From contig NC_086123.1 of the NCBI RefSeq assembly GCF_963921235.1, positions 3,844,001 to 3,908,000 on the forward strand: a stretch of DNA of 64,000 bases, given 5' to 3'. Below, piece by piece: positions 40,297 through 57,700 of this stretch. Below the pieces are notes generated by a model. That model saw nothing but the letters and a program-made list of their open reading frames with translations. It was not told where the DNA came from and did no database searches. Made by a program: the position numbers and the translations under genes. Within the stretch, counting starts at the first letter, position 1. Every line of letters begins with the position of its first letter. The DNA comes from Mobula hypostoma (taxonomy: Eukaryota).

Positions 40297-40525
40297 AAAA
40301 GCAGGCAAGGACGGGATTTTGAGGCCTAGCCTGCAAAAGATTCCTGACCACACAGTAACGACAGCAGCGAACGGGCGTTTCAGAAATTTCTCCAGATGTT
40401 CCTCTGTGCTTTCCCGTCCATTCTCCATCAAATCAGAATTGTCCACGGCCCCTATTTAACAGATACGATATCATTTTGCACCGGAGAGCTGCGCACATGC
40501 AGGCGCGCCGCCATCTTCTCCTCCC
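40297..40525 (-). mobile_element. Retroelement 5'-UTR-like segment fused to PLA2 copy B exon 1
   Basis: CpG-rich; begins GGAGAAGATGGCGGCG, a YY1 consensus typical of internal LINE promoters. The family assignment is from resemblance only. Confidence 0.55.
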
Positions 40526-41207
40526 GCCAGACAAGATTATTGTCCTAAACTTAAGACGAGACCTTAAGCCTTAAAGTTATAGACAGCTATTAGCCTACTC
40601 ACTTGAGAGAGGTTATACTGTAGCAACCTATAAGTCAAAGACTAATTTACTTATCTATTTTGGTCTCTTTTCTGAATGAGTTTAGCTGTCAGTAATCACT
40701 ATTTCGAGTGGTGGGACCACCCCTCACAACCAAGGAGGGGATACTTCCAGCTAACAAAGCAGATTAAACATCATTATTTTATTCTTAAAGAGCACATTTA
40801 CTCTCTGCAGTAATTCGAACAGAGATTATAATTCTAAAGAAGATTTCCAGACACAAGTACCATTCTTACAAAAACTTTGCAATGAGTTGCAGACAGACAT
40901 GTCAGGGCCACAGAAAGGAGGCTTTCTGCAGTTGTAAGTCTCGGGTTGAGACCGAGGAGAAGATTCTATGTCTTCATCTCTGTCAGTCCTCACAACCCCA
41001 CTTCCTTCTAAAGTTTATATCCATTTTATTGCCATTCATCTAAAGTCACCTCATTGGCCCGTGATGTTTTCACAACTGGATTTATCAGGTTAGATGGCAG
41101 GACCCTTAGATTAAAGTAGACAATGTGTTTTCTCTGGATTGGGTTCAAGTCTCAGGTAGGTTCCTGTCCCTGAACCTGCACGTTATTTCTCGATGGGAAA
41201 CGGAAGT

Positions 41208-41915
41208 AGAATCATAGAGAAGTACAGAACAAAAATTGTCCATGCCGAAAACTATTAAATTGCCTACTCCCATCGACCTGCACCGGACCATAACCCTCCA
41301 TACCCCTACCATCCATGCACCGATCCAAACTTCTCTTAAGTGTTGAAATCGAGCTCTCATGCACCACTTACGCTGGCAGCTTGTTCCACGCTCTCACCAC
41401 CCTCTGAGTGAAGAAGTTTCCCTTCATGTTCTCCTTAAACTTTTCACCTTTCACCCTTAACCCATGACCTCTGGTTGTAGTCTCACTCAACCTCAGTGGA
41501 AAACGCCTGCTTGCATTTACAATACCTAAGGACTAATAATTTTGTACATCTCTATCAAATCTCCTCTCAATCTTCTACGTTCTAAGGAATACTGTCCTAA
41601 CCCATGTAATCTTTCCTTATAACTCAGGTCCTCAAGCCCCAGCAACACATCCTTGTAAATATTCTCTGTATTTGTTCAACCTTGTTTATAACTTTCCTGT
41701 TAGTAGGTGATCAAAACTGCACACAATACTCCAAATTAGGCCTCATTAACGTCTTATACAGCTTCAACATAATATCCCATCTCCTGTACTCAGTACATTG
41801 ATTTATGAAAACCAATGTGGCAAAAACTTTCTTTATGACCCTATGAACCTGAGAGGCCACTTTCAATGAATTATGGATCCCTTTGCTCCACCGCACTCTT
41901 CTGTGCCCTACCATT
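41208..41915 (-). mobile_element. CR1 3' fragment
   Basis: LKLYKTLMRPNLEYCVQF. Confidence 0.8.
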
Positions 41916-41919
41916 CGGT

Positions 41920-42270
41920 GAGCTGCCTCCTAACCCTGCACCGGAAGATCAAACGCTCTCTTGAACTCAACCACGAGTTGGTGGAAGGACTGAGCTGTAG
42001 GGGGAACCTTGTTCTCACAGAGCATTGAACAGGTGAATGGAGTCCGAGTGATTCACCACGTACGCACATCATCACTGAACCGACCTGGCTGGGCTTGGAA
42101 AGTCAGCTCACACTGGGTCATAAACTTCCTGCAGCCGTTAGGGTCACCGGAGTATCTGCCTGGTGGAGGGATGCTCGGCTGTGATCCAGAATCAGCTGAA
42201 GGAATGGCTGAGACTGTGATGGGGAAGATGTGGGACATCCCGGAGTGGGATCGTCGGTGCTGAAGGCTGT
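41920..42270 (-). mobile_element. Ty3/Gypsy (Sushi-like) gag fragment
   Basis: PPPGRYSGDPNGCRKFMTQCELTFQAQPGRFSDD. Confidence 0.75.
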
Positions 42271-54257: not shown

Positions 54258-54470
54258 AGAGGGAGGGAAAGGGAAAGAGAGAGAGATAGAGAAATAGTGA
54301 GAAAGAGAGAGGGAGGGAGAGACATGAAGTGAGAGAGAGAAAGAGAGAGACAGAGAGAAAGAGGGAAGGAGTGAGGGAGAGAGGGAGAGAGATGAAGAGA
54401 AAAAGAAAGAAGGGAAGGAAAGGGTGAGGGAGAGAGATACAGATAGAGAGATGAGAGAAAAGAGAAAAAT
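54258..54470. repeat. GA-rich low-complexity tract
   Basis: Seen directly. Confidence 0.85.
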
Positions 54471-54479
54471 AGACAGCAG

Positions 54480-57400
54480 GTATTCAAGGGTTATTTCTTC
54501 AGCGGTTTGATCAGGGAATGATTGCGTAGGCGCGTGAACATCAGCCAGTGAGAATATTGAAAGAGTTTAAAAGGAGACAGCTTTACAGAGCATGTGACAG
54601 AGTGGAGGGAGACAGAGTAGGAAGGCTTTGGCTCAACAGGGCTTTGGTAATAATGGGTCAAGGCAATGTAGGTTGCCTGTATTGAATACAGACAGGAAGA
54701 ATGTTTGTGAGGCCGGTGTTCTGTGTTAGGTGTCAGATGTGGGAAGTCCAGGAGACTCCCAGCCTCCCAGATGGCCACATCTGTGCCAAGTGCGTCGAAC
54801 TGCAGCTTCTTAGGGACTGCATTAGGGAACTGGAGATGTAGCTCGATGACCTACGTCTGGTCAGGGAGAGTGAGGAGGTGATAGACAGAAGCTATAGGTA
54901 GGTAGTCACACCAGAGCCTCAGCTGACAGATAAGAGGGTAACAGTCAGGAGAGGGAAGGGCAGGAGTCAGAGGCTAGAGAGTACCCCTGTGGCTGTACCC
55001 CTTGACAATAACTACTCCTGTTTGAGTACTGTTGGTGGGGACAGCCGACCTGGAGGAATCAACAGTGGCCATGCCTCTGGCACAGAGTCTGGCCCTGTGG
55101 CTCAGAAGGGTAAGGAAAGGAAGAGGATGGCAGCAGTGATAGGGGACTCTATAGTTAGGGGGTCAGACAGGCGATTCTGTGGACGCAGCAAAGAAGCACA
55201 GATGGTAGTTTACCTCCCAGGTGCCAGGGTCTGAGATGTTCCTGATCGCATCCACGAAATCCTGAAGTGGGAAGGTGAACAGCCAGAGATCGTGGTACAT
55301 ATTGGTACCAATGACATAGGCAGGAAAAGGGAGAAGGTCCTGAAAGCAGACTACAGGGAGTTAGGAAGGAAGTTGAGAAGCAGGACCACAAAGGTAGTAA
55401 TCTCGGGATTACTATCTGTGCCACGTGACAGTGAGTATAGCAAAAGAGTGAGGTGGAGGATAAATGCGTGGCTGAGGAATTGGAGCAGGGGGCAGGGATT
55501 CAGATTTCCAGATCACTGGGACCTCTTTTGGGGCAGGAGTGACCTGTACAAAAAGGACGGGTTGCACTTGAACCCCAGGGGGACCAATATCCTGGCAGGG
55601 AGGTTTGCTGAGGCTATTGGTGGGAGTTTAAACTCGTATTGCTGGGGGCGTGGGAACCAAACTGAAGAGATGGAGGAAGAGGTGGTTGGCTCACAAATAG
55701 AGAAAGCTTGGAGACAGTGTGAGAGGGATGACAGGCAGGTGATAGAGAATGGACACAATCAGATGGACAGTTTGAGATGTGTCCATTTTAATGCGAGGAG
55801 TATTATGAACAAAGCGGATGAACTTAGAGTGTGGATCAGTACTTGTAGCTATGATGTTGTGGCTGTTACAGAGACTTGGATGGTGCAGGGGCAGGAATGG
55901 ATACCTCAAGTTCCAGGCTTCAGATGTTTCTGAAAGGACAGGGAGGGAGGCAAAAGAGGTGTGGTATTGTTGATCAGAGATAGTGTCCCAGCTGCAGAAA
56001 AGGAGGAAGACATGGAGGTATTGTCTACGAGTCTCTGTGGTGGAAGTCAGGAACAGGAAGAGGTCAATAACTCGACTGGGTATTTTTTATAGACCACCCA
56101 ATAGTAAAAGGGAAATCGCAGAGCAGATATGGAGACAGATTCTGGAAAGGTGTAATAACAGGGTTGTCAAGGCTGGAGATTTTAATTCCCCAAATATCAA
56201 TTGGCATGTCCCTAGAGCGAGGGGTTTAGATAGGATCGAGTTTGATAGGAGTATTCAGGAAGGTTTCTTGACACAATATGCAGATAAACCTACAAGAGGA
56301 GAGGCTGTACTTGATCTGGTATTGGGAAATGAACCTGGTCAGGTGTCAGATCTCTCAGTGGGAGAGCATTTTGGAGATAGTGATCACAATTCTATCTCCT
56401 TTACCATAGCATTGGAGAGGAATAGGACAGACAAGTTAGGAAAGTTTTTAATTGGAGTAAGGGGAAATATGAGGCCATCAGGTAGGAACTTGGAAGCGTT
56501 AATTGGGAACTGATGTTCTCAGGGAAATGTACGGAAGAAATGTGGCAAATGTTCAGGGGATATTTACATGGAGTTGTGCATAAGTACGTTCCAATGAGAC
56601 AGGGAAAGGATGGTAGGATACAAGAACCATGGTGTACAAAGGCTGTTGTAAATCTAGTCAAGAAGAAAAGAAGAGCTTACGAAAGGTTCAAAAAACTAGG
56701 TAATGATAGAGATCTAGAAGATTGTAAGTCTAGCAGGAAGCAGCTTAAAAATGAAATTAGGAGAGCCAGAAGATGCCATGAGAAAGCCATAGAGGAGAGG
56801 GTTAAGGAAAACCCCAGTGGAAAAGTGTGTATGGAACTGGAGGAGATAGCAGAGGTACTTGATGAGTACTTTGCTTCAGTATTCACTGCAGAAAAGGATC
56901 TTGGTGATTGTAGGGAAGACTTACAGTGAACTGAAAAGCTTGAGCATGGAGATATTAAGAAAGAGGATGTACTGGAGCTTTTGGAAAGCATCAAGTTGGA
57001 TAAGTCACTGGGACCAGACAAGATGTGCCCCAGGATACTCTGGGAGGTGAGGGAGGAGATTGCTGAGCCTCTGGCAATGATATTTGCATCATCACTAGGG
57101 ATGGGAGAGGATCTGGAGGATTGGAGGGCTGCAGATGTTATTCCATTATTCAAGAAAGGGAGTACAGGTAGCCCAAGAAATTATAGAACAGTGAGTCTCA
57201 CTTCAGTGGTTGGTAAGTCGATGGAGAGGACCCTGAGAGGCAGGATTTATGAACATGTGGAGGGGCATAATATGATTAAGAATAGTCAGCATGGTTTTGT
57301 CAAAGGCAGGTCGTGTCTTACGAGCCTAATTGAATTTTTTGAGGATGTAATTAAACACCTTGATGAAGGTGATATATGGAGATGAAGTGTAGATGAAGTG

Positions 57401-57700
57401 TATATGGATTTCAGTAAGGCATTTGACAAGGTAACCCGGGCAAGGCTAATTGAGAAACTTAGGATGCATGGGATCCAAGGGGACATTGCTTTGTGGATCC
57501 AGAAACAACTTGCCCATGGAAGGCAAAGAGTGGTTGTAGCCGGATCTTATTCTGCATGACGGTCGGTGACCAGTGGTGTGCCTCAGGAATCTGTTTTGGG
57601 ACCCCTACTCTTTGTGATTTTTATAAGTGACCTGGATGAAGAATTGGAGGGATGGGTCAGTAAATTTGCTGATGACACAAAGGTTAGCATTGTTGTGGAT
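54480..57700 (+). mobile_element. CR1 with 5' end (zinc finger and SGNH esterase ORF1, endonuclease, RT), 3'-truncated at the rearrangement junction
   Basis: VIGDSIVRG, VHIGTND, DGLHLN; FNARSIMNK..VTETW; YRPP..GDFN..DSDHN; ends just after KFADDTK. Confidence 0.92.

Follow-up and report, generated by a model that had tools for sequence, protein, structure and literature searches.

A nested inverted segmental duplication in the pancreatic-type phospholipase A2 cluster of Mobula hypostoma

The stretch of DNA analysed here (hereafter the window: 64,000 nt of Mobula hypostoma, NC_086123.1, 3,844,001-3,908,000, with 0 gaps) holds a genuine segmental duplication, nested and inverted, within the pancreatic-type (group I) cluster of genes for secretory phospholipase A2 (PLA2). 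An 11.1-kb PLA2 unit was found twice by self-comparison of the window, in opposite orientations. Copy A is contiguous on the plus strand (43142-54254) and consists of approximately 3 kb of upstream sequence, a putative core promoter and a four-exon gene. Copy B, on the minus strand, lies in two pieces, with the gene body (40296 to 31280) to the left of A and the upstream arm (61072 to 57701) to the right of it. These pieces are parted by 17,404 bp (40297-57700), made up of a spacer (X1), the whole of A and a second spacer (X2). With kilobases at 96% identity, the A/B duplication is far beyond chance. The arrangement belongs to a known class of rearrangement, the complex duplication, and is not a new kind of element. 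Its structure is known here from one reference assembly. The public annotation of GCA_963921235.1 agrees with the window (coding sequences of B and A spanning 8,780 bp and 6,174 bp, respectively, 3,981 bp apart and on opposite strands), which only shows that the window and the public assembly are the same.

Architecture of the locus

The copies were compared by self-BLAST of the window and by base-level alignments at the junctions. Window 38548-40299 aligned in inverted orientation with A 48129-46378 at 96.2% identity, and collinear blocks ran on to 31280, corresponding to A 54254. On the other side, window 61072-58833 matched A 43142-45380, again inverted, at 95.6% identity, followed by 58604-57801 against A 45370-46158 at 89.7%. 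The final ~40 bp of the upstream arm of B were alignable only as an impure (CA)n tract. The first-pass annotation, made from the letters of the sequence, had proposed a 17.4-kb block with an inverted copy A inside the promoter of copy B, and self-BLAST bears this out at base resolution: the homology of the body begins with GGCCTG at A 46381 (window 40296), the arm starting at 57701 corresponds to A from 46198 backward, with ACACT (A 46194-46198) ending both copies, and the geometry for which a self dot-plot had been suggested as a check is the one obtained.

Joined together, the pieces of B rebuild the unit without only A 46199-46380, as had been claimed. For these 182 bp, self-BLAST gave no second copy anywhere in the window, and the tally of unit parts is balanced, with two upstream arms, two bodies and one promoter. 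The single-copy centre is on the plus strand and both arms of B are on the minus strand. It holds CAGCTG at 46258, YTATCW at 46285 and 46299, CCAAT at 46309, TATATAA at 46313 and the ATG at 46375, confirming the E-box, GATA sites, TATA and ATG reported there earlier, and judged by these motifs it is a plausible core promoter. The segment order is L, rc(body), X1, up, promoter, body, X2, rc(up), R, or in shorthand L, b', X1, u, p, b, X2, u', R (rc, reverse complement). The features are listed in Table 1.

Table 1. Features of the nested PLA2 locus, in window coordinates (CR1, a family of long interspersed nuclear elements, LINEs; RT, reverse transcriptase; MITE, miniature inverted-repeat transposable element; UTR, untranslated region).
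Feature	Positions	Strand	Remarks
Copy B gene body	31280..40296	-	Exons 1 (partial) to 4; homology to A
Left junction J_L	40296..40297	.	B-A homology stops inside exon 1, just past the expected ATG position
Spacer X1	40297..43141	.	Single-copy in the window; CR1 fragment, (AG)48, annotated substitute first exon of B
Copy A upstream arm	43142..46198	+	Ends with (AC)16 at 46166-46197
Single-copy centre: putative core promoter of A, 5'UTR, ATG	46199..46380	+	Sole part of the unit without a B counterpart
Copy A gene body	46381..54254	+	Exon 1 starts in the centre segment
Spacer X2	54255..57700	+	GA-rich repeat and 3'-cut CR1-type LINE
Right junction J_R	57700..57701	.	LINE RT joined to (TG)n via AGTGT
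Copy B orphan upstream arm	57701..61072	-	Carries private hairpin MITE 58605-58832
Copy C (context)	26359..26451	+	Degraded exon 4 of an older paralogue, in-frame stop

The two genes and the dynamics of the PLA2 cluster

The unit encodes a secretory PLA2, with Pfam PF00068 matching exons 2, 3 and 4 (E-values of 7e-12, 6e-7 and 6e-7, respectively). The exons of A, with splice sites read from the sequence, are 46375-46408, 46505-46664, 47902-48026 and 52430-52548, and their product is a pre-pro-PLA2 of 145 amino acids, 100% identical to XP_062890318.1. It has the calcium loop YGCYCG.GG, His48-Asp49 in CCxxHDxCY, 14 cysteines including Cys11, a propeptide ending in Arg before NLYQF and an exon 3 of loop length; the cysteine set of the Cys11-Cys77-type disulfide of group I PLA2 is present. 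A profile search with the exon pieces matched ray and shark PLA2s, and the best solved relatives of the product among the PDB matches are bovine and porcine pancreatic PLA2 and elapid PLA2s, all of group I. Its sequence thus identifies the A product as a group I secretory PLA2 (PF00068). Mammals have a single PLA2G1B gene. The ray unit resembles it in the four-exon structure, the presence of PF00068 in all three coding exons 2-4 and the group I motifs; the difference is that at least five paralogues with shuffled exon types are annotated in M. hypostoma.

Copy B is beheaded. Only the last 28 bases of its exon 1 are kept (40296-40269), followed on the minus strand by exon 2 (40172-40013), exon 3 (38775-38651) and exon 4 (33733-33615). 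The reading frames are open and the splice sites intact, without a start codon or promoter. In our scripts the break was carried as N/X and left unrepaired. Exons 2-4 are 100% identical to XP_062890223.1, and the proteins of A and B differ at 21 of 143 aligned residues. The public gene model supplies B with a substitute first exon, MAPAYDVPIVDIFQM, which we located in X1 on the minus strand (42394 to 42350; 15 codons, donor GTAAGC). The annotated coding sequence then resumes at 40299, where the acceptor dinucleotide is CT; the nearest AG acceptors (40332/31 and 40327/26) yield another peptide, and no alternative placement of the junction giving the same mRNA was found. For these reasons the N-terminus of XP_062890223.1 is doubtful, and there is probably an annotation problem at this point.

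As for the copies, their age and INDEPENDENCE, B differs from A by 3.9% ± 0.4 in its distal upstream arm and by 3.4% in the non-exon body. The proximal upstream arm diverges more, mainly over the last 89 bp, which are microsatellite. Equal divergence of both B pieces from A implies that they separated from A at about the same time. The coding exons are 8.5% divergent, compared with the 3.4% of the non-exon body, and exon 3 stands out with 23 differences in 129 bases (17.8%; A 47902-48026 against B 38775-38651), synonymous and non-synonymous alike being raised. The exon-3 type of A is common to M. birostris XP_072103728.1 and a Hypanus protein, and that of B to the M. hypostoma paralogues P0243 and P0131 and to P0135 of M. 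birostris. One of the two exon 3 copies was probably overwritten by exchange with a third paralogue, as judged from these types. Accelerated evolution of exon 3 after the duplication was considered and rejected, since both exon types are old, being present in other paralogues and species, and the excess extends to synonymous sites.

Overall, exon-2 and exon-3 types are shuffled among paralogues and species. The pancreatic-type paralogues annotated in M. hypostoma (at least five: P0124, P0127, P0128, P0131 and P0243) are on one chromosome. A 19-residue exon-2 motif occurs in 4 of these 5, but neither the M. birostris nor the Hypanus proteins showed it, a pattern suggestive of concerted evolution since speciation. 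Positional orthologues adjoining a gene for a major facilitator superfamily transporter are only ~80% identical. Taken together, these sequence comparisons indicate that conversion and exchange are frequent in the PLA2 cluster, and dating from divergence is tempered accordingly.

P0243 (XP_062890225.1) lies on the same chromosome outside the window and has no PLA2 neighbour within 10 kb. It starts with an X1-type first exon (24 of 25 residues match X1), continues with FGLIVLLLLS, is B-like to mid exon 2 (2 of 57 residues differ) and is 19% different beyond. Judged by this composition, it looks like a chimeric gene formed by exchange within the cluster. The presence of X1 with a beheaded exon at two diverged loci argues against a misassembly, and it implies that the 5' end of B has been copied or exchanged since J_L formed. 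In comparison, the exact protein of A was found at one place only, and the annotation of the M. hypostoma genome has no second protein matching A at 90% identity or more.

In snake-venom PLA2 clusters, exons are reportedly more divergent than introns, and the families are said to evolve by birth-and-death with rearrangement. The ray cluster is similar in its exon excess (8.5% against 3.4%, with 17.8% in exon 3), in its tandem and inverted paralogues and in its broken copies. In contrast, the excess in the ray exon 3 is best read as an exchange of old exon types and not as fresh accelerated substitution, and there is no evidence of the ray enzymes being venom components. Mobula nevertheless has an expanded and, by the above comparisons, fast-recombining pancreatic-type PLA2 cluster whose exon shuffling recalls that of the venom genes; no paper on this expansion was found.

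An older relic, copy C, lies tail-to-tail with B within 25275-26929, a region 72.6% identical to A 51348-52998. Exon 4 alone is recognisable in it, and its normal stop is lost. Besides C, the window contains no further PLA2 relics that would mark a native context.

Junctions, spacers and private insertions

At J_R, the RT reading frame of a plus-strand CR1-type LINE halts at ...GTGGATAGTGT and is followed by (TG)n; the same LINE end can also be written ...GATAGTGT, continuing as (TG)n. An intact copy of this LINE family reads GATAGTGTAGAGG at the break point, and the reverse complement of A reads CTCAGTGTGTG. The overlap from this comparison is AGTGT (5 bp). The microhomology between CR1 and the microsatellite described earlier therefore stands, with its length corrected from AGTGTG. 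J_R lies 2 bp away from a pure dinucleotide run, of which the 64 kb have only 3 (0.19% of all positions lie as close), and the 3' edge of A (54254|54255) adjoins a GA-rich repeat; these simple repeats are plausible sites of fork stalling or annealing. At J_L, the near-match TT(G/T)GGCC is as it had been described; it is not scorable as microhomology because no source copy of the block-side sequence occurs in the window. Both junctions join unrelated sequence, i.e., they are non-homologous. Terminal repeats at the block ends, whether inverted or direct, do not rise above the level of shuffled sequence, and there is no target-site duplication; instead, the presumed target lacks 182 bp.

X1 contains a 5'-truncated CR1 LINE fragment at ~41207-41930 (minus strand) and (AG)48 at 42502-42596. 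X2 begins with a GA-rich simple repeat (54258-54465), and a CR1-type LINE follows from ~54989. This LINE is 5'-complete and cut inside the RT at 57700, with the first ~160 RT residues remaining. Its reading frames in 55292-57385 match Pfam GDSL lipase (ORF1), Exo_endo_phos_2 and RVT_1 in succession, and its nearest proteins are elasmobranch (72-85%), bird and turtle CR1-like RTs being at ~50%; by domains and nearest proteins it is assigned to the CR1 type. Being 5'-complete but 3'-cut, it is not an insertion product and was broken by the rearrangement. Its 3' part is absent from the window. The X1 fragment was examined as the missing part, which would have been a sign of inversion; it begins near RT residue 203, however, where residue 164 would be needed, and is a 5'-truncated copy of the ordinary kind. 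The window contains no source copy of either spacer, and the older copy C has no flank in common with X1 or X2.

Both copies have gained insertions that the other lacks. Intron 3 of A carries a private young 5'-truncated CR1-type LINE (49090-51307; reading frames of 280 and 425 amino acids) with a precise empty site in B. Private to the body of B are 36216-38547, 35398-35733, 31481-32124 and the MITE arms 34025-34186 and 34299-34421, and its upstream arm holds a hairpin MITE (58605-58832) flanked by a 10-bp target-site duplication, GCTTCAACTT, with an empty site in A. Such private insertions with clean empty sites in the other copy show that A and B are genuine copies ageing separately, unlike a fold-back artefact. 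Members of the MITE-like hairpin family (~225 bp, near-perfect) occur at 58605-58832, 1026-1171, 21735-21903, 34025-34186 and 34299-34421 and are 92-100% alike. Given its private copies, the family appears to have been active since the A/B split.

At the outer edge of B, window 1-308 is an older copy (86%) of 30976-31279 that ends exactly at 31279, with a LINE fragment from 309. The end points 308 and 31279 coincide exactly. Window 1-601 was also considered as an older copy keeping the adjacency of the L end and X1, and this was rejected: the LINEs have no flank in common past the natural end at the 3' side, they differ at the 5' end, and nothing matches the sequence beyond the LINE of window 1-601.

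Origin of the arrangement and its implications

The geometry closely follows the dupINVdup class of complex structural variants (paired-duplication inversions), in which inverted duplicated flanks surround an inverted single-copy centre and which is attributed to two template switches (Collins et al. 2017, citing Brand et al. 2015; PMC5338099). Once X1 and X2 are set aside, what is left (b', u p b, u') matches exactly the dupINVdup scheme A, (C B A inverted), C. The body pair (31280-40296/46381-54254) and the upstream pair (43142-46198/57701-61072) are each inverted and ~96% alike, and the single-copy segment A 46199-46380 is inverted relative to the outer copies. In a resolved human case, too, a single allele carries both an intact and a disrupted copy of the gene, and the junctions show microhomology and insertions of 5-100 bp (Sanchis-Juan et al. 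2018; PMC6286558). The Mobula locus shares with the class the intact and the disrupted gene on the same chromosome and, in part, the junction features (microhomology at J_R, inserted sequence); the mechanism proposed for the class is template switching, in the form of fork stalling with template switching or microhomology-mediated break-induced replication (FoSTeS/MMBIR). The locus differs in its proportions, which are reversed (a centre of just 182 bp between long duplications with 7.9 and 3.1 kb of the unit, enlarged by later insertions), in insertions of ~3 kb instead of tens of bp, and in its age (3.4-3.9% divergence). Counting the edges of X1 and X2, there are four junctions in all, as against exactly two in dupINVdup.

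Accordingly, the reading we hold tentatively, at somewhat less than even confidence, is that a replication-type event with two main switches acted on one ancestral minus-strand gene and made both A and the beheaded B. The ancestral state would have been a single PLA2 gene between L and R. Synthesis would have passed through the body as far as the start of exon 1 and then jumped, at the far end of the upstream region, to the other strand, from where the whole unit was copied backwards to give A with the sole copy of the promoter. A second switch back, 182 bp beyond the point of departure, would have led on through the upstream arm into R. Each switch would have captured ~3 kb of other DNA, namely X1, and the CR1 LINE piece with its flank as X2. 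The 182 bp would then be an unduplicated centre and not a deletion, and A would have been born in the event. As an outcome, A would retain the promoter, with B persisting as open exons 2-4 lacking a start codon and a promoter.

The alternative closest to this is a sequence of two steps, somewhat less probable in our judgement and still to be taken seriously. An earlier duplication would have given a complete A, with X1 and X2 as its flanks, and a complete B; a 17.4-kb fragment with A was then cut out or copied and fitted, in inverted orientation, into a double-strand break in the promoter of B through end joining or microhomology, and the target lost 182 bp. The second step needs only two new junctions, and it accounts for the 3'-side cut of the CR1 LINE and explains both spacers better than the single event does. 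Reciprocal breakpoints across a small gap suit an insertion at one break; the breakage-replication/fusion framework takes such a pair to mark a single ancestral break (Zhang et al. 2026; PMC12807874). The likeness to those gapped-breakpoint insertions lies in the opposite breakpoints 182 bp apart, the foreign DNA between them and the resection-scale loss of target; the difference is that they come from somatic or cancer genomes and experimental clones, and that here the insert contains a copy of the broken gene. Local cut-and-paste between cluster neighbours is plausible. However, the paralogue must land in the promoter of its own paralogue, and nothing in the window, including copy C, marks X1 or X2 as native PLA2 flanks. 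Copy-paste predicts a third A-like gene, whereas none is annotated at 90% identity or above; cut-paste requires four breaks and a healed donor site. The first-pass annotation had concluded that a single microhomology-mediated template switch or inversion placed an existing paralogue into the promoter of B. The microhomology, the one break and the nested geometry hold, but copy-paste with an intact donor is disfavoured by the same lack of a second A-like protein, and the existing paralogue should not be taken as a given fact, since two switches on one ancestral gene are expected to produce the same order. Inversion fares worse: among the single inversions enumerated by reasoning on the segment order, none joins b' and u' in a consistent orientation and so reunites B. 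Non-allelic homologous recombination (NAHR) between inverted paralogues was likewise rejected as the origin of J_L and J_R, since both junctions join unrelated sequence, whereas NAHR would leave seamless junctions inside the homologous arms; by the same reasoning on segment order, recombination between the inverted arms only interconverts equally complex states, although NAHR could flip the locus now.

Judged by its sequence, B represents or descends from a single contiguous unit with one break in the core promoter, since its breakpoints are reciprocal and 182 bp apart and its arms equally divergent; were the pieces independent partial copies, their inner ends would be expected to fall this close together on an 11.1-kb unit in only ~2-3% of cases. 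This coincidence, together with the same divergence from A in both arms and the balanced unit count, makes it unlikely that J_L and J_R are unrelated. In such a history of several steps, the X1 and beheaded-exon 5' end would have arisen once, possibly at P0243, and spread by unequal exchange or conversion, and the orphan arm would be a separate inverted partial duplication of the A upstream region ending in (CA)n, perhaps with later NAHR flips. P0243 does bear the same substitute exon with no A-like neighbour within 10 kb and is B-like only to mid exon 2; the shuffled exon types, the low identity of positional orthologues and the interleaved inverted repeats, which are substrates for flips, point the same way. 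An assembly artefact, with B truly contiguous and the block mis-joined at the microsatellite, is very improbable. J_R does lie in a (TG)n tract, the arms are 96% alike, and exact look-ups of the junction-spanning and exon-2 reading frames in independent assemblies gave no match; but the window is free of gaps, two mis-joins 182 bp apart plus the disappearance of these 182 bp would be needed, the copies differ by 3.4-3.9% and carry private transposon insertions with clean empty sites, and the diverged P0243 has the same J_L-type 5' end. Least probable of all, with hardly any weight, is that the block moved as a retrocopy or as transposon cargo (DNA transposon, Helitron-like element or LINE 3' transduction). 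Both block ends have LINE fragments nearby and transposons are active at the locus, but terminal repeats do not exceed those of shuffled sequence, the target shows a 182-bp deletion and not a target-site duplication, the LINE at J_R has lost its 3' part, whereas target-primed reverse transcription and 3' transduction would leave the reverse, and A retains its introns and promoter, unlike a retrocopy.

Returning to the single event with two switches, several observations weigh against it. X1 (2.8 kb) and X2 (3.4 kb) are far above the usual dupINVdup insertions (5-100 bp; chains of up to 1 kb) and neither has a source copy in the window; if they are the native flanks of A, the two-step course is equally economical. 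Because gene conversion is rampant, homogenisation could be part of the reason why the arms diverge equally. That the ancestral state was single-copy is an assumption, and P0243 shows that the X1 and beheaded-exon arrangement has moved or been copied to another locus, which complicates the history of J_L. We nevertheless regard the single event as slightly more likely than the two steps, because only one event is required and its class is common, the equal divergence follows from it, no landing coincidence has to be invoked and no second A-like gene is annotated; the window alone decides neither way. If true, the locus would be an old case, resolved to the base, of template switching that made a duplicate and beheaded the parent at once, which bears on the growth of gene families and their loss of members.

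The interleaved inverted repeats predict structural instability of the locus. A far-reaching and quite improbable extension is that the single promoter serves as a recombinational toggle, NAHR in either interleaved inverted pair (body/body around 40297-46380, upstream/upstream around 46199-57700) flipping it to the other gene body. If so, a flip would restore a complete minus-strand gene, the diverged PLA2 bodies would be alternative cargoes of one promoter, segregating as inversion haplotypes, and the X1-type substitute exon in two paralogues would be a by-product of flips.

Elsewhere in the window, Rfam and tRNA scans gave no matches. An older duplicate pair (6862-8360 and 18398-19949; 86-88%) has one 1.3-kb piece flipped in place, with palindromes at 7162-7356 and 19129-19442; it may be an inversion-type rearrangement or a transposon with long inverted ends.

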